The notes: generated by a model from the sequence alone, not told the origin. Positions 1,661 to 54,911 are shown, numbered from the stretch's first letter. The stretch: 64,000 nucleotides of DNA from IMGVR_UViG_3300040801_001224:186001-250000, one strand, 5' to 3'. Translations and numbers: made by a program.

Positions 1661-3103
1661 ATGTCAGACATGAAGAAATGGTTGAAGCTAATGGAAGATG
1701 CGGCGCCATCAAGCCCAAAAGCAGACCTATCCAAGCCTGAATCACCAATGGACGATGATCCAGAATTTACAAATGAAAAGGGTGAAGACAGCGTTGTTAC
1801 ACACATGGCCGAAGATGGCATGGAAGATTACGTTGAAGACACAAGTTTTGAAGAATGGTTAATGGATCCAGCAAACGAAGGCAAATCAATGCCGGTAGAA
1901 ATGATGATTGCTGACATTAACGAACACGGTCCAGATGCTACTGCGGCATATTGGATGGCAACAGAAGAGCAAATCCAATCCTGGATTGATGCTGGTAAAA
2001 TTCCAGAAGATTCGATGCACTACTTCCAGAACACTCAGGAAGAAAAAGCATATGAAATGCACCAAGCGGCAGAAGATGCGATGGGTGGATTTAACGGCTA
2101 CCACCATCAACAAGAAGGCATCAAGACTCCAACTGAAGAAGTTGAAGAAGAGCTAGGTCCAGAACATAGCGACAACCCAGACGCTGAAGAAGCCATGATC
2201 AACGACGAAGGCGAATTAAGCCCATTCTCAATGGACACTCAGGAAGTATGCGAAGATGATGATCTAGCAGAAATGTTAGCATTGGCCGGTATTCAGAAAG
2301 TCAATGAAGATGAGTTCGACGACGAAGAAGAACTTGAAGCTGATGATGACGCAATGGTTGATTTAGGTGAGCCTGACGATATTGATGCGATTGATCCAGA
2401 TGCGATGTCAGCAGACAAAGAGATTGGTGACGCAGTTGTTGGCTCGGCGCCAGAAAACGTTGATGAATTAATTGCGGCAATCATGGACGCACAGATGCTG
2501 GGCATGAGCCAGGCTAAAGCAACATACAGTGATGACATGCTAATCAACATGTCTCCAGAGCGTGTTAAGTCAGTATACGCAAAAGTTATGGGTGAAAGCC
2601 TAGAAGAAGACATGGGTGAAGAACACCCACTAGCTAAGTTCAACATTCATACACAGGATGATTTGGACATAGCACTAGACGATCCGGAGATCGTTGCAGA
2701 GCTAACTGAATACTTTGCAGACGAAATGCCATACGGTTACCAGAAAGCACGTACAGGAACTCCAGAAGAATGGTTATGGGACCATTTACACGCTGATCTA
2801 GAAGAGTCTTGCGGTGACGCAGTTGAAGAAAAACTGGTTAAAGATGGCCCTGGTGAAGGACACTTTGACGGTGAAGTGGATTGTACGACAGAGTTTGATG
2901 ATTCATGCTATGATGAAGTTGAAGAAGACGTTGCTGGTATTGATCCAGAGATTGAAGCGGCTATCCTAGACTTAGCAATGGCTTTGGGTTTAGAAGATGC
3001 TGATCAAGACGATGCAGAAGTAATTGGTAAGAAACTTGACGTGCCAGCAAGTGACGTACACAAAGTTATTAACCAAGACTTAACACAAGAATCTAAGAAG
3101 TAA
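1661..3103 (+). CDS. Highly acidic late protein (possible head internal/scaffold-type protein)
   Basis: 480 aa, very D/E-rich; GATAAATA box at 1626-1633 and SD AGGAG; function inferred only from composition and late promoter. Confidence 0.6.
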   Translation: MSDMKKWLKLMEDAAPSSPKADLSKPESPMDDDPEFTNEKGEDSVVTHMAEDGMEDYVEDTSFEEWLMDPANEGKSMPVEMMIADINEHGPDATAAYWMATEEQIQSWIDAGKIPEDSMHYFQNTQEEKAYEMHQAAEDAMGGFNGYHHQQEGIKTPTEEVEEELGPEHSDNPDAEEAMINDEGELSPFSMDTQEVCEDDDLAEMLALAGIQKVNEDEFDDEEELEADDDAMVDLGEPDDIDAIDPDAMSADKEIGDAVVGSAPENVDELIAAIMDAQMLGMSQAKATYSDDMLINMSPERVKSVYAKVMGESLEEDMGEEHPLAKFNIHTQDDLDIALDDPEIVAELTEYFADEMPYGYQKARTGTPEEWLWDHLHADLEESCGDAVEEKLVKDGPGEGHFDGEVDCTTEFDDSCYDEVEEDVAGIDPEIEAAILDLAMALGLEDADQDDAEVIGKKLDVPASDVHKVINQDLTQESKK

Positions 3104-3106
3104 TTC

Positions 3107-3135
3107 TTGACATCTTTACATCACTATAGTATAAT
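3107..3135 (+). promoter_or_regulatory. sigma70 promoter; predicted +1 coincides with ATG 3142 (leaderless)
   Basis: TTGACA(3107)-17-TATAAT(3130-3135). Confidence 0.8.
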
Positions 3136-3141
3136 ATTGGT

Positions 3142-4263
3142 ATGCGTTTTAAAGATATAACATTGAACACGATTAATGAAGGCGGTAGCTCAGGCAAGAC
3201 TCGATATAACAGCGAAGTCGCAACTTTATGTGCCTTCTGCGGCGTCAAACATTGGGATGACATTAGACCAGAACAACTAGCAAACCCAGAAGATACTAAG
3301 GCGCAGTTGCGTTATTGGATGGTAGAGAAAAAGAACTATGACGAAAAACTGTTTAACGAATGGCTTGTTCGCGGCAAGGAAATATATACTAAAATAAAAT
3401 CCCATTACAAAGGCCCAATGCCAACCTTGTATGGTTGGGTCGGCGGTGCGAATGTTGGGCCAGTAGCAGATGTTGAGTTTCATGATCATGAACTGTCGGG
3501 AGTCAGCATAAAAGCCAAGGGTGGGATTACACTCGCTAACTTGGGACCGAAGTCAGTCGGTTTACCAACTCCTAAGGGTGTAGATGCTCTACAGCAATAC
3601 GTTGGCAAAGAGTACTTAGAGTTCAAAAAGAACGTATTTACAAAAGTGTTGGCACTAGCAAAGAAACAACCAAACAAGCCATTGAACGGAAGATACACAA
3701 TTGCTTATGTGCCAGAAGTAGATAAGTTTTTATTGAGGCACAAAAAAACTGCTACTGCCGGCCCAGTAGTTGACACGTTGCTTACTGGTCAAGAAATAAT
3801 GACCTTAGGTATGAAAAGCAATAGCGCCTGGCAACGTCCGATTGGTGATTGGTTCCAGGATAACTTAGCCCAGGAGTTTGATTTGATGAAGCCCTTACTG
3901 GATAAGGTTGAAGTGGTTTTATTGGCACTAATAGAAAAGGCTATTGGCGCAAGTGACACTATGAAGTCTATATTACGATTTGAAGACAAGCCCTATTATT
4001 ACGCATCACCAACAAAAATATATTATGTGCCTTCGGCACAAGAAGATCCTGAGTTAGTTTTGAAAAAACTGACCCCAGTTAAAGCTAGGGGCACTGGAAT
4101 AATATTTAGGGCGTATGTGTCTAATGTAGATTCAACATCAAGCGATTATGCGACATACGATGTATATCTAAGATACAGAAATGGGCTGTTTGCTTCTAAC
4201 ATTACAGTGGCGGCACAAAATCTAAAAAATCCACAAAACCTAGCATGGGACGAGGTTGAATGA
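3142..4263 (+). CDS. Hypothetical protein, possible PD-(D/E)xK restriction-like nuclease
   Basis: 373 aa; ADVEF...GVSIK resembles a D...SxK nuclease core; overlaps MTase start (ATGA). Confidence 0.45.
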   Translation: MRFKDITLNTINEGGSSGKTRYNSEVATLCAFCGVKHWDDIRPEQLANPEDTKAQLRYWMVEKKNYDEKLFNEWLVRGKEIYTKIKSHYKGPMPTLYGWVGGANVGPVADVEFHDHELSGVSIKAKGGITLANLGPKSVGLPTPKGVDALQQYVGKEYLEFKKNVFTKVLALAKKQPNKPLNGRYTIAYVPEVDKFLLRHKKTATAGPVVDTLLTGQEIMTLGMKSNSAWQRPIGDWFQDNLAQEFDLMKPLLDKVEVVLLALIEKAIGASDTMKSILRFEDKPYYYASPTKIYYVPSAQEDPELVLKKLTPVKARGTGIIFRAYVSNVDSTSSDYATYDVYLRYRNGLFASNITVAAQNLKNPQNLAWDEVE

Positions 4264-5129
4264 CACACAACATCATATGTAGCGACAACATATCAGCTCT
4301 TAATAAAATAAACGAAAACACATTTGATTCCTGTATAACAGACCCACCGTATGGAATGGGCATGGATGACTGGGATCATACTGTCCCTCCAGTTGAGATC
4401 TGGGAGGCAGTATACCGAACACTAAAACCAGGTGCGTTTGTTTTAAGTTTCTGCTCTCCGGAATTATATCATAGAATGGCAATTAACGTTGAAGATGCTG
4501 GTTTCAGACCATTAGACATGATTACTTGGATTGTTACTACAAAGATGGCAAAAACAAATAGATTAAAGCCAGCACATGAACCTATATTTGTAGCACAAAA
4601 GCCACTACAAGGTTCCATTAAAGCTAATGTTGAAGCATGGGGTTGTGGCGAGATTGATATCGAAGACGCCAGAATACCGTGGGATAAAGAGCCCCCAACG
4701 TATCCTACTGGCGGACATCAGAGAAGAGCATTCGGTAAAGACGTATCTAAAGAAAAACAAGGCAAAAAGAAAGCTAATATCAAAGGAAGATACCCTTCTG
4801 ATGTCATTGGACACTTCGATGATCCGGATCATCAGAAGTATTTTTACGCACCTAGAGCTACAAGAAAAGAACGTGGTGAATACAATGATCACCCAACGCC
4901 TAAGCCTATTAGTTTAATGAGGTATTTGGTTAGAGTTTACTCTCCGAAGGGTGGACACGTACTAGATCCTTTCAATGGCAGTGGTTCAACAGGTATAGCC
5001 GCTATTCAAGAAGGTAGTGAATTTACAGGAATAGACATGTCACAACATTACTGTGATATTGCTGAAAAAAGAATAGCAGACCATTGTGCCGAAACACCTT
5101 TTGAAAAGTTATTTGATTACGAAAAATAA
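4260..5129 (+). CDS. DNA N6-adenine/N4-cytosine methyltransferase, beta class
   Basis: Motif IV TDPPY precedes motif I LDPFNGSGST; HPTPKP. Confidence 0.93.
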   Translation: MTHNIICSDNISALNKINENTFDSCITDPPYGMGMDDWDHTVPPVEIWEAVYRTLKPGAFVLSFCSPELYHRMAINVEDAGFRPLDMITWIVTTKMAKTNRLKPAHEPIFVAQKPLQGSIKANVEAWGCGEIDIEDARIPWDKEPPTYPTGGHQRRAFGKDVSKEKQGKKKANIKGRYPSDVIGHFDDPDHQKYFYAPRATRKERGEYNDHPTPKPISLMRYLVRVYSPKGGHVLDPFNGSGSTGIAAIQEGSEFTGIDMSQHYCDIAEKRIADHCAETPFEKLFDYEK

Positions 5130-12987: not shown

Positions 12988-13663
12988 TGAAATATCATTA
13001 TTGAAGATGAGTACAGGATTTTACGGTAATAGAATTAATGACACAACTATTTCACCGACATATTGGGAATTAACATATGAGATAATTCCTACTGAAGTAA
13101 GCGTTGAGGGCAAGATTAATCGTGGTGAGATTGCCTATGAGAAATTAAAGTTTTGGATTGATTACATCCTAAATGATTTGACGGTGAGCGAACACTCCAA
13201 TGAATTAGCCATGCAGATGTCATATATGTTTGAAAATCCAACTATGCTAACACCCTATTCGCCAACTAACAATCACTTAATACAGTTATTACATTCCAAG
13301 TTTTCAGCAATTGTTGGTGATGACCTGTATATTGGAAAGATGACACTGTCAAGCTCAGAAACTGACAGCGTGTGTGTGTTTAATACTGACGAAGGCGCAT
13401 ATAGCCTCCCGGAAGGCGATGAATACATTGTTGGCATGTACCACGATAAGCCATGGTGGCAACGCAAAACAATGGACTTTGCAGATTTTACTAAAGAAGA
13501 AATTGATAGCGATGAAGCGTTGCGTGAATTCATTGAGAATGAAGATCCACTAGTTACCTTTGAACGTGATATTATTGAGAGCGTGGCAGAAGCAACTAAC
13601 CGAAAACCACAGACAGCAGAAATCATTAAAGTACCTAAGAAATGGAAGCCAAAGATAGTTTAG
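12980..13663 (+). CDS. Conserved jumbo-phage hypothetical protein
   Basis: 227-aa ORF ending KWKPKIV immediately before the DnaE-like fragment. Confidence 0.75.
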   Translation: MFNEISLLKMSTGFYGNRINDTTISPTYWELTYEIIPTEVSVEGKINRGEIAYEKLKFWIDYILNDLTVSEHSNELAMQMSYMFENPTMLTPYSPTNNHLIQLLHSKFSAIVGDDLYIGKMTLSSSETDSVCVFNTDEGAYSLPEGDEYIVGMYHDKPWWQRKTMDFADFTKEEIDSDEALREFIENEDPLVTFERDIIESVAEATNRKPQTAEIIKVPKKWKPKIV

Positions 13664-14154
13664 GACGCATAACATTATCCGAGCAGGATTGTATAGACTT
13701 ATTGTTAAACGGCATTCAATTGCAGAATGTTTACGTTGACGATAAATCTGTGTCTGAAAAATATAACAGAAAAAACGACGAATACTTTCGCTATGACAGC
13801 GTTTTATCTGTGAAGGAGGACGTTTCTTTTGAAGAATTCCACCAGAATAATGTGGATACGTGGTTTATGCCAGATAAGTACAAGAACATAGATGTCAGAG
13901 AATACGTCTTAGATCGTGTCAGCACAGATGAAGAACGTGAGCGTGTTGAAATGGAATACGCCATGTACAAAGAACGAGATTTAGATGACGTATTGCGCCT
14001 TATGATTTTCCTTATAGAATTCTTTAGGGAAAACGACATTGTTTGGGGCGTAGGTCGTGGTTCAAGTGTAGCTTCATATATTTTATATATTATAGGCGTA
14101 CACAAGGTAAATTCAATCCTATACGATCTCGATATCAATGAATTTTTAAAGTAA
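13642..14154 (+). CDS. Stand-alone DNA polymerase III alpha (DnaE)-like fragment
   Basis: GVGRGSSVASYILYIIGVHKVN..YDL..EFL matches the DnaE GRGSxxxSLxxY motif; only 170 aa. Confidence 0.8.
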   Translation: MEAKDSLGRITLSEQDCIDLLLNGIQLQNVYVDDKSVSEKYNRKNDEYFRYDSVLSVKEDVSFEEFHQNNVDTWFMPDKYKNIDVREYVLDRVSTDEERERVEMEYAMYKERDLDDVLRLMIFLIEFFRENDIVWGVGRGSSVASYILYIIGVHKVNSILYDLDINEFLK

Positions 14155-46383: not shown

Positions 46384-46773
46384 ATGAGTACATTTAAAGC
46401 AGGCGCTAGACCTCACGTAATCGAGGAACATGAGAAGCCAGTAGAAGAAACAAACGTATTAGGAAAACATTGGAGAACAGCGTGTGCTATAATCTACCTA
46501 GTTATCTGTGTGTTCGATTTCTTAATAATGCCAGCAATGTTAACTCAGTATAGTAAAGAGCAAGATTACTCTCAATTATTTATTGAGATTTCAAAGCTAG
46601 AAAGTCCACAGGCACAAACGGCATTAATCAACAAGATTGATTATAGCGTACAAACATGGGATCCTATTACACTACAGGGCGCAGGAATGTTCCATGTAGC
46701 ATTTGGTGCTATTTTAACAGGTGTTGTGTTATCACGTACAGGAAGGGAAAGAATCACTAGAAGGGTTGATTAA
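46384..46773 (+). CDS. Holin-like membrane protein (3TM/GTA-holin-like)
   Basis: HWRTACAIIYLVICVFDFLIMP...W.PITLQGAGMFHVAFGAIL; late box at 46350. Confidence 0.65.
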   Translation: MSTFKAGARPHVIEEHEKPVEETNVLGKHWRTACAIIYLVICVFDFLIMPAMLTQYSKEQDYSQLFIEISKLESPQAQTALINKIDYSVQTWDPITLQGAGMFHVAFGAILTGVVLSRTGRERITRRVD

Positions 46774-47225
46774 TGAGACTGTATGAGATTGATAGTGAGC
46801 CGGGAACATATGTTTCTGTAAGGTTTACTAAAGACACAAATAAAAAATTACGTGAGTTTGCTCTAAGTTTGGGTTTAAAGCCTATTGACAAATTTCACAT
46901 TACTGTAGTTTATTCACCAAAACCATTAGGTGTAGAATTTGGCGAGAGCAGATTTAACGGATCTGCTAAAATAACTGGCATAGATTATTTAGGTGATATT
47001 GACTCTGAGTACAGGGCAGTTGTATTGCACGTTGATTCAAAAGAAGTACAAAATTTATATGATACGTATGAAGTAATACATGGGTACAAACACACATATG
47101 ATGAGTTTATCCAGCACGTGAGTTTAGCTTATCGGCCACCAGAGGATTTGGATTTAAGTCAAGTAGATTTACCAGACTTTGAAATAGAATTTAGTTACGT
47201 AAAAATTGAGGCATTAAAAGAATGA
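46773..47225 (+). CDS. 2H phosphoesterase, T4 gp57B/Acb1 (anti-CBASS)-like
   Basis: GTYVSVRF, FHITVVYS, HTYDEFIQHVSLAY and terminal EALK parallel the T4 57B pattern. Confidence 0.85.
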   Translation: MRLYEIDSEPGTYVSVRFTKDTNKKLREFALSLGLKPIDKFHITVVYSPKPLGVEFGESRFNGSAKITGIDYLGDIDSEYRAVVLHVDSKEVQNLYDTYEVIHGYKHTYDEFIQHVSLAYRPPEDLDLSQVDLPDFEIEFSYVKIEALKE

Positions 47226-48531: not shown

Positions 48532-48560
48532 TTGACAAAGGATATAGATTGTAGTATAAT
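48532..48560 (+). promoter_or_regulatory. sigma70 promoter
   Basis: TTGACA-17-TATAAT. Confidence 0.8.
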
Positions 48561-48593: not shown

Positions 48594-48866
48594 ATGACAG
48601 ATAGAGAATACAACTCTAAAAGTTTCAAACAGGAAGATATCGTTCGTTTAAAGCAGTTAATGACTGAAGGCTGTCAAGTGATGCAGGAAGTTGATGACCT
48701 AAACGAAGGCTTAAACGATACAATTAAAGCGATTGCTGAAGAGATTGAAGTTAAACCAGCCCAATTGAAAAAAGCAATTAAAATCGCATACAAGAACTCA
48801 ATGATCGAAGAGCGTGATAAGCTTGACGAAATTGATGACATATTACAGGCGGCTGGCCGAGGATAA
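48594..48866 (+). CDS. Small helical dsDNA-binding protein (T4 DsbA/GapR-like, tentative)
   Basis: EVDDLNEGLNDTIKAIAEEIEVKPAQLKKAIKIAYK pattern; upstream of polymerase. Confidence 0.55.
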   Translation: MTDREYNSKSFKQEDIVRLKQLMTEGCQVMQEVDDLNEGLNDTIKAIAEEIEVKPAQLKKAIKIAYKNSMIEERDKLDEIDDILQAAGRG

Positions 48867-48872
48867 TGAGAG

Positions 48873-49241
48873 GTGGCAAAACATATCGTAATAGTAGACG
48901 ACGACCCTACGGTTATTCAGATACTAAAAGCGTTTATTCGCCAGGCCATTAATGGCAATGGTCATTACGATATTGTCACCTTTGATAACATAACTGAAGC
49001 CTGTGATTATATAACTGAACATCCTGTGGATTTATTATTCCAGGATGTTCACGTTCAAAGCGACTTAGACGGATTAATTGCCGCTCGAATAGCCAAAAAC
49101 TTTGGTGTTCCGGTAGTTGTTATCACTTCTGATATCTGTCTATCAATAGTTGAAAGAGTCGCTAAGGGTAGATACGACAAGCTAATACTAAAGCCCATCA
49201 GTATTGGTGAAGTGAAACACGCCCTAGATCTTTGTAAATAA
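48873..49241 (+). CDS. Stand-alone CheY-like receiver domain protein
   Basis: IVIVDDD, phospho-acceptor D (LFQD), T/S (VITSD) and K (LKP) all present. Confidence 0.88.
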   Translation: MAKHIVIVDDDPTVIQILKAFIRQAINGNGHYDIVTFDNITEACDYITEHPVDLLFQDVHVQSDLDGLIAARIAKNFGVPVVVITSDICLSIVERVAKGRYDKLILKPISIGEVKHALDLCK

Positions 49242-49245
49242 TCAC

Positions 49246-49274
49246 TTGACAAAACCCCCGTTATATAGTATACT
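49246..49274 (+). promoter_or_regulatory. sigma70 promoter for polB
   Basis: TTGACA-17-TATACT. Confidence 0.75.
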
Positions 49275-49300
49275 ATAGCACTATAGTAGGAAAGGATTCT

Positions 49301-51670
49301 ATGTACGTACACGCACGATATTCTAAAGAAGAAGACATAATCAACATCGTTGAACGGGTAGACGGTGAAAGAGTTTATAAAGAATTTAAGCCCGACCATT
49401 CATTTTACGTTGAAGATCCACGTGGCACATATACGAGTATCTTTGGCGACACAATCACAAAGTTACAACCTAACAGCTACAAAGACAAGCGTAGGCTAGG
49501 CAAATTACATGGCGCAAAGAAAACATTTGAGTTTGACTTGCCACCAATTGCTCGTTGTATTGAACAACACTACAGTGACTCAGATCCCGCAGATTTACAT
49601 GTTGCTTTCTTCGATATTGAGACCGACTTCGACAAGGAGTTGGGCTACTCTAGTCCTGATGAAGCCTTTAATCCAATTACATCTATCGCTGTATATTTAC
49701 AGTGGATGGAGCAGATGATATGTCTAGCAGTTCCGCCCAAAACCCTAACCTGGGAAGAAGCACAGGAGATAGCAGGTGAAGTACCTGACGTTATTTTATG
49801 TAAAACAGAAAATGAAATGCTTCAGATGTTTTTAACAATTATTGATGACGCAGATGTGCTTAGTGGTTGGAACTCAGAATTTTACGATATTCCATACACA
49901 ATTCATAGAATTATGAATCAATTAGGAAAGCATGAAGCACGTAAAATGTGTTTATGGGATGAAATGCCACGCAAGAAGACCATTGAGCGTTTTGAAAAGC
50001 AGGAAGTAGTATATGAGTTAACTGGTCGTGTACATCTAGATTACTTAGAACTATACAAGAAGTACACATATGAGGAACGACAATCCTATAAACTGGATGC
50101 TATTGCTGAATTTGAGTTAGGTGAGAAAAAGGTCGAATATCCTGGAACACTTGATCAATTGTACAAAGAAGATTTTAAGAAGTTCCTGGAATACAACATC
50201 CAGGATACCATGCTCCTGGAAAAGCTGGATAAAAAATTAGACTTTATATCACTAGCCAACACAATTGCCCTGGGCTCAAGCGTATTGATGCCAGCAACGA
50301 TGGGTGCGGTAGCAGTAACAGAACAATCCATCATTAAAGAAGCGCACAGACGTGACATGATGGTGCCTGACAAGAAGCAAGGCGATAAAGGTGATACCCG
50401 AGCGGCAGGGGGCTGGGTACAGCAACCTAAGAAAGGCTTACATCATTGGGTAGGCAGTTCGGATTTGAACTCACTGTATCCATCAGTTATCCGTGCGTTA
50501 AATATGAGTCCAGAAACAATTGTGGGACAGCTAGTAACTGACAAGACGAATCAGGAAATTGCTGAATGGATTGCCAGTGCTAAGTCACGTACTTTCGCAG
50601 GATGGTGGAATGATAAATTTAATACCCTGGAGATGGATGATTTTATCAACAAGAACAGTAGTAACAAACACACATTCCAGATGGAGGATGGCTCAAAGAG
50701 TCCTATAACTGGCGCAGAGTTACATGAGATTGTTTTTAAGAGTGGGCAACCCTGGTGTATTAGTGCTAACGGCACAATATTTAGGACAGACATTGATGGT
50801 ATTATTCCTGGACTACTAGCAGGCTGGTACGCAGATCGTAAAGCAATGAAGAAAATTCTCTGGAATCTAATTCAATTGCGTACGGGTCTAATCGATGCTA
50901 AAATTGACAACTCTGATATTACAGTGCCAAGCGAAGTGCCTAACTTGCGTAAACTGGCATATGGTGAGCTTGACAAGTGCTTTGAATTGGAAGGCTCTGA
51001 ACGTGCGGCATTTGCCAGCAAGTTTGGGTTAGAAGTTAGAGACGGAAAGTTTTGGGCAAGAGATGAATTTGTTAAAGACTACAAAGACGCTGAAGGCTAC
51101 TGGGACAAACGTCAGCTGGTACGTAAGATTAACCTTAACTCACTATACGGCGGATTGCTTAATGAGCATTGTAGATTTTATGACCATAGATTAGGACAAT
51201 CAACTACACTAACCGGACGTAGTATTACAAGACATATGGCGGCAAAAACAAATGAATTTTTAACTGGTGAATACTCAGAGAAAGGCAAGACTATTATATA
51301 TGGTGACACCGACAGTCTGACAGGTGATTCGATTATTGAAACTTCATTAGGTCAGATGACCATCGAAGAATTGTACGAAAAATGTGAATCATATACAGAA
51401 AACGAAGACAAAGAATATGGGCATGATAATGATATGATGGTCATGTCGTATGATGAAAGTAGAGATGAACCATACATGGGACACTTCGATTATGTGTACC
51501 GCCATAAAGTGTCAAAAGATTTATATGAAATAGAAGATGATAACGGCAACGTAGTGACTGTGACAGAAGATCATTCGGTTATGGTTGAGCGTGATGGAAA
51601 GTTAATAGAAATGAAGCCAGCAGATATACAGGAAGCCGATATCATTATTTCACTTGAAATTACTAAATAA
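49301..51670 (+). CDS. Family B DNA polymerase N-terminal half fused to split intein N-fragment
   Basis: Exo DIETD, SDLNSLYPS, KINLNSLYG, YGDTD followed by intein block A SLTGDSII. Confidence 0.95.
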   Translation: MYVHARYSKEEDIINIVERVDGERVYKEFKPDHSFYVEDPRGTYTSIFGDTITKLQPNSYKDKRRLGKLHGAKKTFEFDLPPIARCIEQHYSDSDPADLHVAFFDIETDFDKELGYSSPDEAFNPITSIAVYLQWMEQMICLAVPPKTLTWEEAQEIAGEVPDVILCKTENEMLQMFLTIIDDADVLSGWNSEFYDIPYTIHRIMNQLGKHEARKMCLWDEMPRKKTIERFEKQEVVYELTGRVHLDYLELYKKYTYEERQSYKLDAIAEFELGEKKVEYPGTLDQLYKEDFKKFLEYNIQDTMLLEKLDKKLDFISLANTIALGSSVLMPATMGAVAVTEQSIIKEAHRRDMMVPDKKQGDKGDTRAAGGWVQQPKKGLHHWVGSSDLNSLYPSVIRALNMSPETIVGQLVTDKTNQEIAEWIASAKSRTFAGWWNDKFNTLEMDDFINKNSSNKHTFQMEDGSKSPITGAELHEIVFKSGQPWCISANGTIFRTDIDGIIPGLLAGWYADRKAMKKILWNLIQLRTGLIDAKIDNSDITVPSEVPNLRKLAYGELDKCFELEGSERAAFASKFGLEVRDGKFWARDEFVKDYKDAEGYWDKRQLVRKINLNSLYGGLLNEHCRFYDHRLGQSTTLTGRSITRHMAAKTNEFLTGEYSEKGKTIIYGDTDSLTGDSIIETSLGQMTIEELYEKCESYTENEDKEYGHDNDMMVMSYDESRDEPYMGHFDYVYRHKVSKDLYEIEDDNGNVVTVTEDHSVMVERDGKLIEMKPADIQEADIIISLEITK
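51314..51667 (+). mobile_element. Split intein N-fragment (118 aa, Ser1)
   Basis: SLTGDSIIET..TIEEL; block B VTVTEDHSV; stop immediately afterwards. Confidence 0.9.
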
Positions 51671-51708
51671 TGGTAAATACTATGGAGCTTGTTGCGTAAA
51701 GGAGTATT

Positions 51709-52668
51709 ATGCCGAAATGTTTAGAATGTGGTTTTGAAGCACCACGACTACAATGGACACACTTCCGATACAAATGTACCGGAAAATTTAAGAACGGCCG
51801 CGAGTATATGGCGGCATATCCGGGCGCAAAGGTAGTTGATGATGATTTGGCCAAAAAGACTGCGGTGACTGAAGAAAATCTTATCAAAAAATATGGTGAA
51901 GAAGAAGGCATTCAACGATTCAAGGAATACAAGGAAAAACAAGCGTACACTAACAGTCTCGAATATAAGGCAGAAAAAAATGGCTGGACAAAAAGCCAAT
52001 TTGATGAGTATAACCAAAGTAGAGCATGTACGTTGGAAAATTTAATCGAACGTCATGGCGAAGAAGTTGGTGTAGCTAAATGGGATGATTATATTGAGCG
52101 ACAACGTTATACAACTACAATCGAATATTTCAAAGAAAAATATGGTGCGGAAGGTGAAGAAAAATGGAATGAATTCTGTCGTGAACGAGGCAAATCAAGC
52201 AGTATAGAATTTATTCAGAAAAAATATAATGTAACAAAAGAAGAAGCCGAAACACTATTGGCTGGAAGATACCGTAATAGATATACTTCACAGATGGAAA
52301 TGGACTTCGTTGATGATATCCAAAAATGTGTAGGTGATATTAAATATACGGCACAAACGAACCAATTCTGTATATGGTCATATGAGTTAGATGCTCCTGT
52401 ATTTTATGATGTAGTTGATAGTGATAAAATGAAAGTTATAGAATTCAATGGTGATTATTGGCATCAAAACCCAAAGAAATATTCGGCTGATTCAAAAATA
52501 TCTCAATCTGGAAAAACCGCCAAAGATGTGTGGGAAAGAGACAGGATAAAATTAAATGAAGCTAAGAAACGCGGTTTTGATGTTATGGTAGTGTGGGAAA
52601 GTGATTATCAAAATAATCCAACTCAAGTATTAGATAATGTGGTGAAGTGGTGGAATAATGAAGGATAA
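51709..52668 (+). CDS. Free-standing Vsr/EDxHD-like homing endonuclease between the split polymerase halves
   Basis: N-terminal CxxC..H, KYGxEEG repeats, C-terminal FYD..VIEFNGDYWH..VVWE; TAAATA boxes at 51664/51674. Confidence 0.88.
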   Translation: MPKCLECGFEAPRLQWTHFRYKCTGKFKNGREYMAAYPGAKVVDDDLAKKTAVTEENLIKKYGEEEGIQRFKEYKEKQAYTNSLEYKAEKNGWTKSQFDEYNQSRACTLENLIERHGEEVGVAKWDDYIERQRYTTTIEYFKEKYGAEGEEKWNEFCRERGKSSSIEFIQKKYNVTKEEAETLLAGRYRNRYTSQMEMDFVDDIQKCVGDIKYTAQTNQFCIWSYELDAPVFYDVVDSDKMKVIEFNGDYWHQNPKKYSADSKISQSGKTAKDVWERDRIKLNEAKKRGFDVMVVWESDYQNNPTQVLDNVVKWWNNEG

Positions 52669-52885
52669 GTTGTTAAATATATTAAAAGCTAAAACTCCAG
52701 AAGAAGTTGATAAAGCCAGTAGAGAGTTTATGTCAAATGTGGGTACAGATCAGATATCATTAAAGCGAGCTAAAGTTAGAAAAGTTAGAAAAGTTAGAAA
52801 AGCAAATGATGAATATGTATATGATGTGGGTATGAAAAATAAAAATCATCCATGGTTTTTTGCGAATAATATCCTTGTCCACAAC
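52658..52885 (+). mobile_element. Split intein C-fragment (blocks F and G)
   Basis: YVYD (block F), LVHN (block G), +1 Ser. Confidence 0.9.
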
Positions 52886-53770
52886 TCAGTTTATTTTTCA
52901 GCATACCCAGCGTATAAAGAGCAGATTGAAGCAGGTGAACTGGAATGGAATAAAGAAAAGGCTGTTGAACTGTATGATGAAATATCTTCAATGGTGAGTG
53001 ACACGTTCCCGCAGTTTATGTTGGATGCGTTTAATGTACCCTATGCGAGATCTGAAGGTGTTATTGCCGCAGGTCGTGAAATTGTAGCAAGCACAGGCTT
53101 GTTTATTAAGAAGAAACGTTATGCGGCAATGGTGTATGACAACGAGGGTGAACGCAAGGATGTAGATGGTAAGCCGGGTAAAATGAAAGCAATGGGCCTG
53201 GATCTAAGACGTGCTGACACACCGGTATTCGTACAAGAGTTCCTATCCAAAGTATTAACAATGGTGTTAACAGAACACACTGAAGAAGAATGTATCCAGT
53301 TCATCAAGGAATTTAAGGAATTGTATGACGACATGGCACCCTGGGAAAAGGGTACACCCAAAGCAGTAAACGGCGTAACCAAGTACATGAATAAGATTGA
53401 AGAACGTAATAAGCAGATTGCCCGTGGCCAAACGCCTAAGACTCTAATGGTTCCCGGTCACGTACAAGGCAGTTTCAACTGGAACTTATTGCGTGAGCGT
53501 CACAATGACTTACACAGAGCAAAGATCACAGACGGATCAAAGGTGATATTGTGTTACTTAAAGGATAATGATTATAAATTTAAGAACATTGCTTATCCTG
53601 TAGAAGAAAACCATTTGCCAGACTGGTTCTTAGAACTTCCATTTGATGAAGAACGCATGATGGAGAGTGGTGTGGATAAGAAAATTGAGAATATGCTTGG
53701 CGTAATGAAGTGGGATTTAAGCAAAGCAAGTAAACAAGCAGATCACTTTGGATCACTATTTGAATTTTAG
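52658..53770 (+). CDS. Split intein C-fragment fused to family B DNA polymerase C-terminal half
   Basis: YVYDVGM..FFANNILVHN|SVYF then IKKKRYA, MGLDLRRADTP; alternative start ATG 52730. Confidence 0.93.
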   Translation: MKDKLLNILKAKTPEEVDKASREFMSNVGTDQISLKRAKVRKVRKVRKANDEYVYDVGMKNKNHPWFFANNILVHNSVYFSAYPAYKEQIEAGELEWNKEKAVELYDEISSMVSDTFPQFMLDAFNVPYARSEGVIAAGREIVASTGLFIKKKRYAAMVYDNEGERKDVDGKPGKMKAMGLDLRRADTPVFVQEFLSKVLTMVLTEHTEEECIQFIKEFKELYDDMAPWEKGTPKAVNGVTKYMNKIEERNKQIARGQTPKTLMVPGHVQGSFNWNLLRERHNDLHRAKITDGSKVILCYLKDNDYKFKNIAYPVEENHLPDWFLELPFDEERMMESGVDKKIENMLGVMKWDLSKASKQADHFGSLFEF

Positions 53771-53778
53771 GAGCTATT

Positions 53779-54111
53779 ATGCAGTGGAATACAATTAGCA
53801 AAGAAGAGAAAGAAAAGCGTAAACAGGAATGGCACGTAATCTTTGCGTGGTTACCACATAAAATCACACGTAATCGCAACGGCATAAACCGTTGGGCATG
53901 GTTAGAAAATATTGGCCGTAAATACGTGAAAGAAGTAGGCTGGTTAGACAATATGCCTGCAGATGTCTGGATTAAAGAATATGCTAGTAAAGAAGACGCA
54001 GTTTTTTACGCAATGGGTGGCCAGGAACCTGAAAAAGATCAAGACATAAGGTCAATAAGGCCATTAGGTCCACCACCTATGCCAACCGTAAAACCACCAA
54101 AGAAAAAATAA
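53779..54111 (+). CDS. Trp-rich paralog 4 (FAWLP...WAWLE)
   Basis: HVIFAWLPHK..RWAWLENI; SD AGGAG, TTG start. Confidence 0.7.
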   Translation: MQWNTISKEEKEKRKQEWHVIFAWLPHKITRNRNGINRWAWLENIGRKYVKEVGWLDNMPADVWIKEYASKEDAVFYAMGGQEPEKDQDIRSIRPLGPPPMPTVKPPKKK

Positions 54112-54112
54112 C

Positions 54113-54141
54113 TTGACACAACCAATACACTATGTTATAAT
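54113..54141 (+). promoter_or_regulatory. sigma70 promoter
   Basis: TTGACA-17-TATAAT. Confidence 0.8.
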
Positions 54142-54167
54142 GTGTAAATTAACAGGAGAACTTTTGA

Positions 54168-54911
54168 ATGATTAGGGATAGTTTTAAAGATATTTTAGGC
54201 CATACACATGGCTTAAGTTTCATCACAGACGTAAAGTTAACAGGCGAATCAGATAAGACACGCATTGAAGCAATTGCTGAAGACAAGTCAGTTGTTTTAA
54301 TGGGTGAAACTAAAGAGCCAATTGCTGACTTAACAGACCACGTTGTTGGTTTACATCGCATGAGCGTACTGAGCGGTTACATTAGTGGCCCAATGTTTGA
54401 CACAGACGAAGCAGAGATTTCTATTGTTGAGCAGACACGTGGCGACACAACCCAGCCTACAGAAATCAAGTTTGATTCTAAGAAAGGCCACAAGGCGTTT
54501 TATCGTTTTATGGGTGAAGAAGCCGCAAGCCAGATTGAAATGCCAAAGTTTAAAGGTGTTGAGTGGAATGTAGCATTCCAGCCCACAATTGATAACTTAA
54601 AAGAGCTTTCATACTTTGCTGGTATTTTAGGATCTTATGAACCTTCTTTTGAAGTACACATGCAGGATGGAAATTTACAGTTCCATATCGGTACTGGTGC
54701 AAGTGACCGCACAGTATTACCAATTGCTTCGGACTTAGAAGGTAACTTAAATACAGCACACCATTATCCATTAGCACAGGTACTGAGTATCCTTAAGTTA
54801 AGTGATAGCGAGCAGTGTGTGATCCAGTTCAGTGATGTTGGCTGTATGCAGATTACACTAGACAGTGGTTTGGGCATTTACGACTTTATCCTACCAGCAA
54901 AGATGCGATAA
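54168..54911 (+). CDS. DNA polymerase sliding clamp (gp45/PCNA-like)
   Basis: 247 aa two-domain beta-rich layout, adjacent to polB, C-terminal YDFILPA. Confidence 0.75.
   Translation: MIRDSFKDILGHTHGLSFITDVKLTGESDKTRIEAIAEDKSVVLMGETKEPIADLTDHVVGLHRMSVLSGYISGPMFDTDEAEISIVEQTRGDTTQPTEIKFDSKKGHKAFYRFMGEEAASQIEMPKFKGVEWNVAFQPTIDNLKELSYFAGILGSYEPSFEVHMQDGNLQFHIGTGASDRTVLPIASDLEGNLNTAHHYPLAQVLSILKLSDSEQCVIQFSDVGCMQITLDSGLGIYDFILPAKMR

Follow-up and report, generated by a model that had tools for sequence, protein, structure and literature searches.

A naturally split intein and a Vsr-like endonuclease gene within the YGDTDS motif of a jumbo-phage DNA polymerase

How a phage could obtain an intact DNA polymerase from a gene that is broken within the codons of its catalytic motif is the question raised by the locus described here. 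The stretch analysed (IMGVR_UViG_3300040801_001224:186001-250000, 64,000 nt, hereafter the window) belongs to a jumbo phage from a microbial-mat metagenome, the virus record of which is complete at 328,096 bp with terminal repeats. In the window polB is spread over three open reading frames (ORFs), all on the plus strand, at 49301-51670 (789 aa), 51709-52668 (319 aa) and 52658-53770 (370 aa). Gene 1 encodes PolB residues 1-671 followed by the 118-aa N-terminal half of an intein (IntN), gene 3 the 76-aa C-terminal half (IntC) followed by PolB residues 672-965, and the gene between them a Vsr-like endonuclease. We consider it very probable that this is a selfish cassette made up of a split intein and a homing endonuclease, and that PolB is rebuilt by protein trans-splicing. 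A first-pass annotation, made from the sequence alone, had proposed that PolB is fractured in YGDTDS by a split Ser1/Ser+1 intein, and the ORFs, motifs, profile matches and an empty site in a relative all agree with it. The arrangement is real, although of a kind already described in other phages.

The interrupted polymerase gene

The PolB profile matches of genes 1 and 3 are colinear, gene 1 carrying in order the PolB exonuclease, the polymerase up to motif C and the intein N-terminal profiles (PF14890, TIGR01445), and gene 3 the intein's C-terminal end and then the rest of PolB. By script count the N-extein ends at D671 (nt 51313) and the C-extein starts at S77 of gene 3 (nt 52886). The parts of the locus are:

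49301..51313, plus strand: PolB N-extein, residues 1-671, with the exonuclease domain and the polymerase domain up to YGDTD (PF03104, PF00136; phrog_262 at 3e-144)
51314..52885, plus strand: inserted cassette (IntN, spacer, endonuclease gene, IntC), 1,572 nt, missing from the uninterrupted allele L009 by DNA and protein comparison
51314..51670, plus strand: IntN, 118 aa and stop codon, with Ser1, the NX motif RH at 63-64 (nt 51500-51505) and TEDH at 84-87 (nt 51563-51574)
51671..51708, plus strand: spacer, 38 nt, with the endonuclease ribosome-binding site (RBS) AAGGAG at 51699-51704; no Rfam match
51709..52668, plus strand: free-standing EDxHD/Vsr-like homing endonuclease, 319 aa (phrog_22677 at 7.6e-52)
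52658..52885, plus strand: IntC, 76 aa, of which residues 1-32 are a conserved extension and about 33-76 the canonical part (about 44 aa) with blocks F and G
52772..52802, plus strand: perfect 9-nt tandem repeat AAAGTTAGA, 3.4 copies, encoding KVRKVRKVRK
52886..53770, plus strand: PolB C-extein, 294 aa and stop codon, comprising the remainder of the palm and the thumb, its first residue being the +1 Ser of YGDTD-S (phrog_262 positions 581-851)

The limits of the insertion are set by L009, an IMG/VR contig with the closest polymerase relative found, in which polB is one uninterrupted frame (...IVYGDTDSVYFSAY..., motif YGDTDSVYF). N-extein residues 54-671 align with L009 residues 1-618 without a gap at 73% identity and C-extein residues 1-293 with L009 residues 619-911, likewise gapless, at 75%. 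Since the two exteins abut at the adjacent L009 residues 618|619, the insertion is exactly 51314-52885; splicing is predicted to give a PolB of 965 aa in which motif C is normal. L099 and L100 likewise have an empty allele. The gapless fit to L009, together with the recurrence of the arrangement in dozens of independent loci, places it beyond chance. DNA contigs from a public run also span the left junction and the boundary between gene 1 and the endonuclease gene at no less than 99% identity, but may share their source sample with the window assembly and are not independent support.

One reading of such a gene is that it is dead, a pseudogene broken by a mobile element in a phage that relies on another polymerase. 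The gene is indeed physically interrupted, and a DnaE-like Pfam match lies elsewhere in the window. Against this, both exteins are full length, free of frameshifts and gapless against an intact homologue at 73-75% identity; the DnaE-like match is a conserved 170-aa phrog_11127 protein and no replicase; PolA is absent from the complete 328,096-bp genome, in which PolB matches, intein matches and a copy of the endonuclease occur nowhere but at this locus; and the arrangement is stable in many lineages, including the cultured, viable phages PA5oct/MIJ3, Aes123 and CP21. We regard a dead gene as very improbable.

A second possibility is that the 1.57 kb are removed at the RNA level, as a group I or group II intron, or are passed over by translational bypass. 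The polB genes of the close relatives L092 and L094 are interrupted by group I introns, and Vsr-like endonucleases occur within group I introns too (PMC3239194). An Rfam scan of 48800-54300 at E <= 1 found no intron, however, while the same method detects the RF00028 group I introns in polB of L092 and L094 at 93-95 bits. The cassette holds only 38 nt of non-coding space, and the fold of 51630-51730, 5' of the endonuclease gene, contains no significant hairpin (z = -0.12 against shuffles). Moreover, the 118-aa and 76-aa flanks show conservation at the protein level, intein motifs included, for which an excised RNA would have no need. Removal at the RNA level or by bypass is the least probable of the explanations that we weighed.

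The split intein

The two ends of the insertion read as the two halves of an intein. Gene 1 closes with ...IIYGDTD|SLTGDSII...TEDH... and a stop codon, Ser1 of the intein being S672, and gene 3 opens with ...YVYDVGM...LVHN|SVYF, in which the terminal Asn76 is followed by Ser77 at +1. The splicing motifs are all present (Ser1, N3/block B TEDH, block F VYDVGM, block G LVHN and Ser+1). The NX Arg-His at IntN 63-64 aligns with KH in Aes123 and RH in MIJ3, its His being invariant in the alignment, and [R/K]-His at this motif is a signature of Ser1 inteins (Pasch et al., PMC10189870). TIGR01445 matches at 36.2 bits (cut-off 24.5) and PF14890, in a six-frame search, at 38.1 bits (cut-off 35.8), IntC covering positions 118-155. 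In the PDB the best match of IntN is 9HTH, the Aes123 PolB1 intein, at E = 1.5e-13, followed by other HINT inteins including Pho RadA and Mja TFIIB, and the best match of IntC is the cysteine-less PolB16 intein; a HINT fold of the two fragments is suggested by this homology to solved inteins, gene 3 alone being modelled at pLDDT <50 over IntC. Judged by motifs and profiles, the locus is a class-1 cysteine-independent (Ser1/Ser+1) naturally split intein inside the PolB YGDTD|S motif.

The halves are strongly and oppositely charged. By script IntN has a net charge of -21, a pI of 4.2 and one Cys, and IntC a net charge of +8, a pI of 10.0 and no Cys, counts which agree with the first-pass annotation both on cysteines and on an acidic IntN facing a basic IntC. 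The single Cys of IntN, C24, lies outside the catalytic motifs and is replaced by Ser or Thr in MIJ3 and Aes123. An acidic IntN with a basic IntC is shared by MIJ3 (-14/+4) and L010 (-15/+3), whereas Aes123 shows the reverse polarity (+8/-11), as do L012, L020, L078 and L087, and most other relatives have an acidic IntC; within the relatives compared, charge segregation is most extreme in the window. In the Aes system Aes-N bears the positive charge, and electrostatic capture drives assembly (PMC11923092, PMC12707363). The main source of positive charge in the window's IntC is the KVRKVRKVRK repeat. The repeat appears to reflect homogenisation and not expansion, because the matching stretch of relatives (KVKRVTKVRK) is of equal length though less regular.

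IntC is also long. Its first 32 residues (52658-52753) form an extension that is common to L092-L094 and longer in L010, L062 and MIJ3, canonical IntC fragments (35-46 aa) having no such addition. In the AlphaFold (AF2) model of gene 3, helices appear at residues 2-10 and 14-26 with pLDDT of about 45-60, and residues 25-82 have pLDDT <50, such that the extension may, with low confidence, consist of two short helices.

Three known inteins are particularly close. PA5oct/MIJ3 (Wroclawvirus) is the closest cultured polymerase relative at 52.7% identity, and the MIJ3 intein (Imam et al. 2019, PMC6892783) resembles that of the window in the DTD|S...HN|S site, the split point, the acidic IntN and basic IntC and the lack of Cys; its IntC is likewise long, at 85 aa. 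Aes123 PolB1 (PMC11923092; 9HTH; engineered CL/CLm variants), for which trans-splicing and thiol independence have been shown experimentally (PMC11923092), shares the insertion site, Ser1/Ser+1, the NX and N3 motifs and a Vsr-like gene between the halves, but differs in charge polarity and in an IntC of 39 aa without extension, and its host is a T4-like phage with an extra 43A/43B break in polB. The PolB mini-intein of Salicola phage SCTP-2 is homologous, being 41% identical to IntN, and sits in the same catalytic motif; unlike the window's intein, it is a contiguous stretch of about 148 aa in a single ORF, lacks an endonuclease, lies in the register YGD|S...KN|TDS and carries Lys where the penultimate His would be. 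The class to which the first-pass annotation referred is represented by Aes123 PolB1, CP21 and PA5oct/MIJ3 (published in 2019), which share both insertion site and split point. Its further suggestion of a distinct allele has to be divided: as an intein allele the window's copy is not distinct, since Aes123, CP21 and MIJ3 have the same insertion and split points, but as a divergent lineage it is, with IntN identities of 33-36% to Aes123, 51-56% to MIJ3 and 68-71% to the metagenomic loci L092-L094.

From the conserved motifs we infer that trans-splicing occurs here, and the homologues Aes123 PolB1, CP21 and LCGC14 trans-splice in vitro (PMC11923092, PMC12707363). An alternative is that the intein halves serve for nothing more than non-covalent dimerisation, the PolB fragments assembling unspliced. 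Functional non-covalent split polymerases exist, such as the gp43A/gp43B subunits of some T4-like phages, and Aes123 itself has a gp43A/gp43B break without an intein (PMC3045599); the Aeh1 NrdA fragments split by mobE offer an analogous unspliced assembly. Yet Ser1, TxxH, the NX His, the block F Asp, HN and Ser/Thr+1 are conserved here and in more than 60 loci, including those without an endonuclease, and an unspliced complex would lodge 194 aa between the catalytic Asp and the Ser of motif C. We therefore hold assembly without splicing to be improbable.

Under trans-splicing the course of events could be as follows. The 1,572-nt selfish cassette would sit in the codons for the PolB motif YGDTD|S, and the three genes would be transcribed together from the promoter at 49246, the endonuclease being translated from its own RBS and gene 3 being coupled to it through the 11-nt overlap. 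The acidic IntN (-21) and basic IntC (+8) would associate electrostatically to form a HINT domain, in which oxyester chemistry would proceed from an N-O acyl shift at Ser1 through attack by Ser+1 and cyclisation of Asn76 to the final O-N shift. The outcome would be a 965-aa PolB with an intact YGDTDSVYF. The endonuclease, dispensable for splicing, would propagate the cassette, in co-infections, through cleavage of alleles that lack it.

Cysteine-less split inteins that work efficiently have been described as rare and sought after (PMC12707363), and the first-pass annotation had pointed to a protein-engineering tool. Such use is plausible, a charge-inverted relative of Aes123 being a reasonable candidate for an orthogonal pair. 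It is conceivable, although we would not expect it on present evidence, that the window, L010 and L092-L094, with MIJ3 nearby, make up a charge-inverted sub-lineage with a helical IntC extension of 32-45 aa that provides a third independent thiol-free pair. If the polarity gives orthogonality to Aes/CLm and LCGC14, and the acidic IntN resists aggregation, a third trans-splicing pair would be available. The IntC extension may be an accessory element in the assembly of split inteins that has not been described before.

The endonuclease gene and the mobility of the cassette

The endonuclease gene shares its frame with neither gene 1 nor gene 3, has an RBS of its own and occupies the position of an intein's endonuclease site; its stop overlaps the start of gene 3 by 11 nt. 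The ATG at 51709 is backed by a conserved N-terminus, although one ESM Atlas copy begins at residue 34. The nuclease domain spans aa ~190-316 (nt 52276-52656). In alignments of 31-32 homologues E197, D234, E245, N247, H252 and D278 are invariant or at least 90% conserved, and in a profile alignment with E. coli Vsr they correspond to E25, D51, the F62 position, H64, H69 and D97, the spacing from D234 to E245 being that from D51 to F62 of Vsr. The Vsr and MTES_1575 profiles match the 319-aa protein weakly; against the PDB, the single sequence gives spurious matches and a profile reaches Vsr at E = 0.45. The AF2 model has a pLDDT of 93.3, and the best four PDB matches found with it by Foldseek are chains A and B of 3R3P (probability 0.99-1.0, TM by target 0.60-0.68), 1CW0 and 1VSR, with modest E-values for the 3R3P and Vsr matches (0.04-0.13); in the ESM Atlas it reaches DUF559/MTES_1575/Vsr nuclease clusters at TM 0.77-0.87. 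The N-terminal half contains a conserved CCHC cluster, C-x2-C-x10-H-x4-C (C4, C7, H18, C23), and three helical repeats (about aa 55-165), with weak ESM leads to Ros/MucR zinc fingers (0.80); no NUMOD Pfam profile matches the 319-aa protein.

The best structural match to the nuclease domain is the EDxHD prototype I-Bth0305I (PMC3239194; 3R3P), which has the same catalytic pattern, with Asn at the Vsr His64 position and an extra acidic residue at the Vsr Phe62 position. I-Bth0305I differs, however, in being encoded by a group I intron in recA and in having N-terminal NUMOD motifs, and a sequence profile of the window's endonuclease family fails to reach 3R3P at E <= 10. On its conserved residues and modelled fold the middle protein, which the first-pass annotation had taken for a Vsr-like homing endonuclease, is an EDxHD/Vsr-like homing endonuclease that has kept its catalytic residues; it probably cleaves DNA, with the uninterrupted polB as its presumed target.

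The corresponding gene of MIJ3 (L001:7405-9087, orf154; 560 aa, annotated 'HNH homing endonuclease III') differs in architecture from the 319-aa protein but shares an EDxHD/Vsr-type core with it (AIEYNGLYWH; hhalign E = 7.5e-5), and it is probably mislabelled as HNH. An unrelated endonuclease in MIJ3, which would imply a swap of endonuclease family, was considered and rejected, since hhalign recovers the shared nuclease core.

IMG/VR contains endonuclease homologues at 289 places, of which 80 loci were fetched and examined. In at least 76 of the 80 the endonuclease gene is flanked, on one side or both, by intein signatures. The register of the window (YGDTD|S...HN|S) is found in 15, and at least 60 have another, 6 nt upstream (YGD|S...HN|TDS, in which +1 is Thr; for example L013-L016, L023 and L025); sites a and c of the DnaB inteins, two residues apart, offer a precedent for such close registers (PMC4760082). 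In three of the 80 the endonuclease is free-standing. The intein itself was found in 48 phage records, several of them already annotated as intein-containing split polymerases, in the PA5oct group, Salicola SCTP-2, Campylobacter CP21, Aeromonas Aes, Klebsiella KP13-7, Tenacibaculum PTm1/5, Vibrio VPALA and Lak megaphages. The split point is identical across all homologues. Those characterised biochemically are the Aes123 PolB1, CP21 PolB1, LCGC14 PolB2 and GOM-OPS-1 PolB2 inteins.

Within this set the endonuclease decays while the split intein remains. In L093 it is full length and 62% identical to that of the window, in L094 (4813-4998) a 62-aa C-terminal remnant without any catalytic residue, and in L092 (4880-5000) a spacer of about 120 nt, with both intein halves retained in all three at 62-71% identity. 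Retention of the split intein without the endonuclease is as expected if splicing is essential, and the series from intact through decayed to lost endonuclease fits the model of gene breaking in Dassa et al. (2009, PMC2677866), a paper that counts eight fractured enzyme types. Like those loci, the window has the gene halves in original order and orientation, each with one intein half, and between them a free-standing endonuclease gene with its own start signals; the hairpin 5' of the endonuclease gene, which is frequent but not defining in their data set, was not found in the window.

Comparison of trees suggests how the cassette came to be here. The sister of the window on the PolB C-extein tree is the empty allele L009 (100/98), followed by MIJ3 (97/85); the endonuclease tree joins the window to L093 and L010 (100/99), and the intein tree to L010 and L092-L094 (91/90). 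The grouping of the window with L010 and L092-L094 is rejected by the polymerase data (delta lnL 208, p-AU 4.9e-5) and favoured by the intein data; three long-branch rows were excluded from these tests. Similarly, the register label requires 8-9 changes on the polymerase tree (6-8 of them forced by well-supported branches) against 1-2 on the intein and endonuclease trees, where the two registers are two lineages, which are interspersed on the polymerase tree. L078 and L013, for example, have polymerases that are 82% identical, with inteins at 42%, endonucleases at 39% and different registers. From the tree conflict and the register changes it follows that intein and endonuclease behave as one mobile unit, which on these sequence comparisons is co-diverging in two lineages and travels jointly between polymerases up to 84% identical. 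For the cassette of this phage a horizontal gain is possible, or else a precise loss in L009. Site-specific double-strand cleavage would be the force that drives homing, the presence/absence polymorphism and the tree conflict being indirect signs of it.

Several observations weigh against a mobile, trans-splicing cassette. The intein data, although they favour the window with L010 and L092-L094, leave the window with MIJ3 unrejected (p-AU 0.083), and the groups used in the topology tests were named after the trees had been seen. No co-conversion tract was found, extein identity to cassette-bearing relatives not being raised near the junctions, so any transfer would be old. The model of gene 3 is of low confidence, and the promoter at 49246 is no more than a match to the consensus. 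In metatranscriptomes of the same microbial-mat sample nothing from the locus is present, a result that is uninformative and not negative. Finally, some natural relatives splice incompletely through aggregation of IntN (PMC11923092).

The mobility of the cassette also bears on a proposal of the first-pass annotation, that replication is timed or gated by the split intein, co-opted as a checkpoint, which would add to trans-splicing of a selfish cassette and not exclude it. The intein does stand in the catalytic centre of the only replicase, its split form outlasts loss of the endonuclease, and conditional protein splicing has been discussed for replisome inteins (PMC4760082). Once split, the intein is nonetheless expected to persist in any case, since nothing short of a precise deletion can remove it; L009, the closest polymerase relative, works without an intein; the distribution tracks mobility and not host phylogeny; and no redox-sensitive Cys is present to serve as a switch. 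We find no evidence for a checkpoint, the distribution fitting a selfish mobile cassette, and consider that role unlikely.

Current understanding is unchanged by this locus, since the class, the site and a close cultured example have been published. New here are the co-divergence of intein and endonuclease and their joint movement across polymerase lineages in two registers 6 nt apart, the persistence of the split intein in relatives where the endonuclease is intact, decayed or lost, and the charge polarity of this lineage, opposite to that of Aes123, together with the conserved 32-aa IntC extension. One motif offers a natural series of empty site, contiguous mini-intein and split intein with an intact, a decayed or no endonuclease, and illustrates how an essential replicase could become permanently dependent on protein splicing.

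Expression and neighbouring sequences

Two signals precede gene 1:

49246..49274, plus strand: sigma-70-like promoter, TTGACA-17-TATACT, 11/12 matches, 27 nt 5' of gene 1
6 nt 5' of the ATG of gene 1, plus strand: RBS GGAAAGGA, preceding the start of the N-extein

The total of promoter-like sites equals the shuffle expectation, and the case for the promoter at 49246 lies solely in how well the site matches and where it stands. All three genes are probably driven by it, and no plus-strand terminator was found between genes 1 and 3, such that the three are probably co-transcribed. Perfect sigma-70 consensus promoters (TTGACA-17-TATAAT) lie on either side of the polB operon, at 48532-48560 and 54113-54141, preceding the ORFs at 48594 and 54168 respectively, and therefore suggest that the polB gene block relies on the host sigma-70 holoenzyme.

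A megablast search of the locus against phage records, among which the window's own was probably masked, gave no match. Directly 5' of polB, 48873-49241 encodes a stand-alone response-regulator receiver domain protein (PF00072, 1.1e-13), which is unusual in a phage. Further upstream, the 150-aa ORF at 46773-47225 has an above-cut-off match to Acb1, an anti-CBASS protein (PF23474, 9.5e-17), and its product is likely a counter-defence phosphodiesterase. The DnaE-like match mentioned above is the 170-aa ORF at 13642-14154, which contains part of the palm of DnaE (pol III alpha; PF07733 positions 17-94); a second replicase or a broken gene was considered there and rejected, the ORF being a full-length member of phrog_11127 ('DNA polymerase', 171 positions).

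Among the relatives, L017-L019 have an endonuclease homologue (4001-4948), 52-53% identical, which stands amid unrelated small ORFs with no flanking intein signature. The group I introns of L092 (4100-4314) and L094 (4026-4240) are without an ORF and lie in motif B of polB (KINLNS|.YG), and in L094 a 397-aa ORF with a weak NUMOD3 match (2656-3849) is inserted further upstream in polB; intron, intein and endonuclease genes thus make a mosaic of the polymerases of L092 and L094. In L093 (1836-4011) the N-terminal part of polB occupies two overlapping frames (1836-3332 and 3283-4011), which could represent a frameshift, an assembly error or another break.

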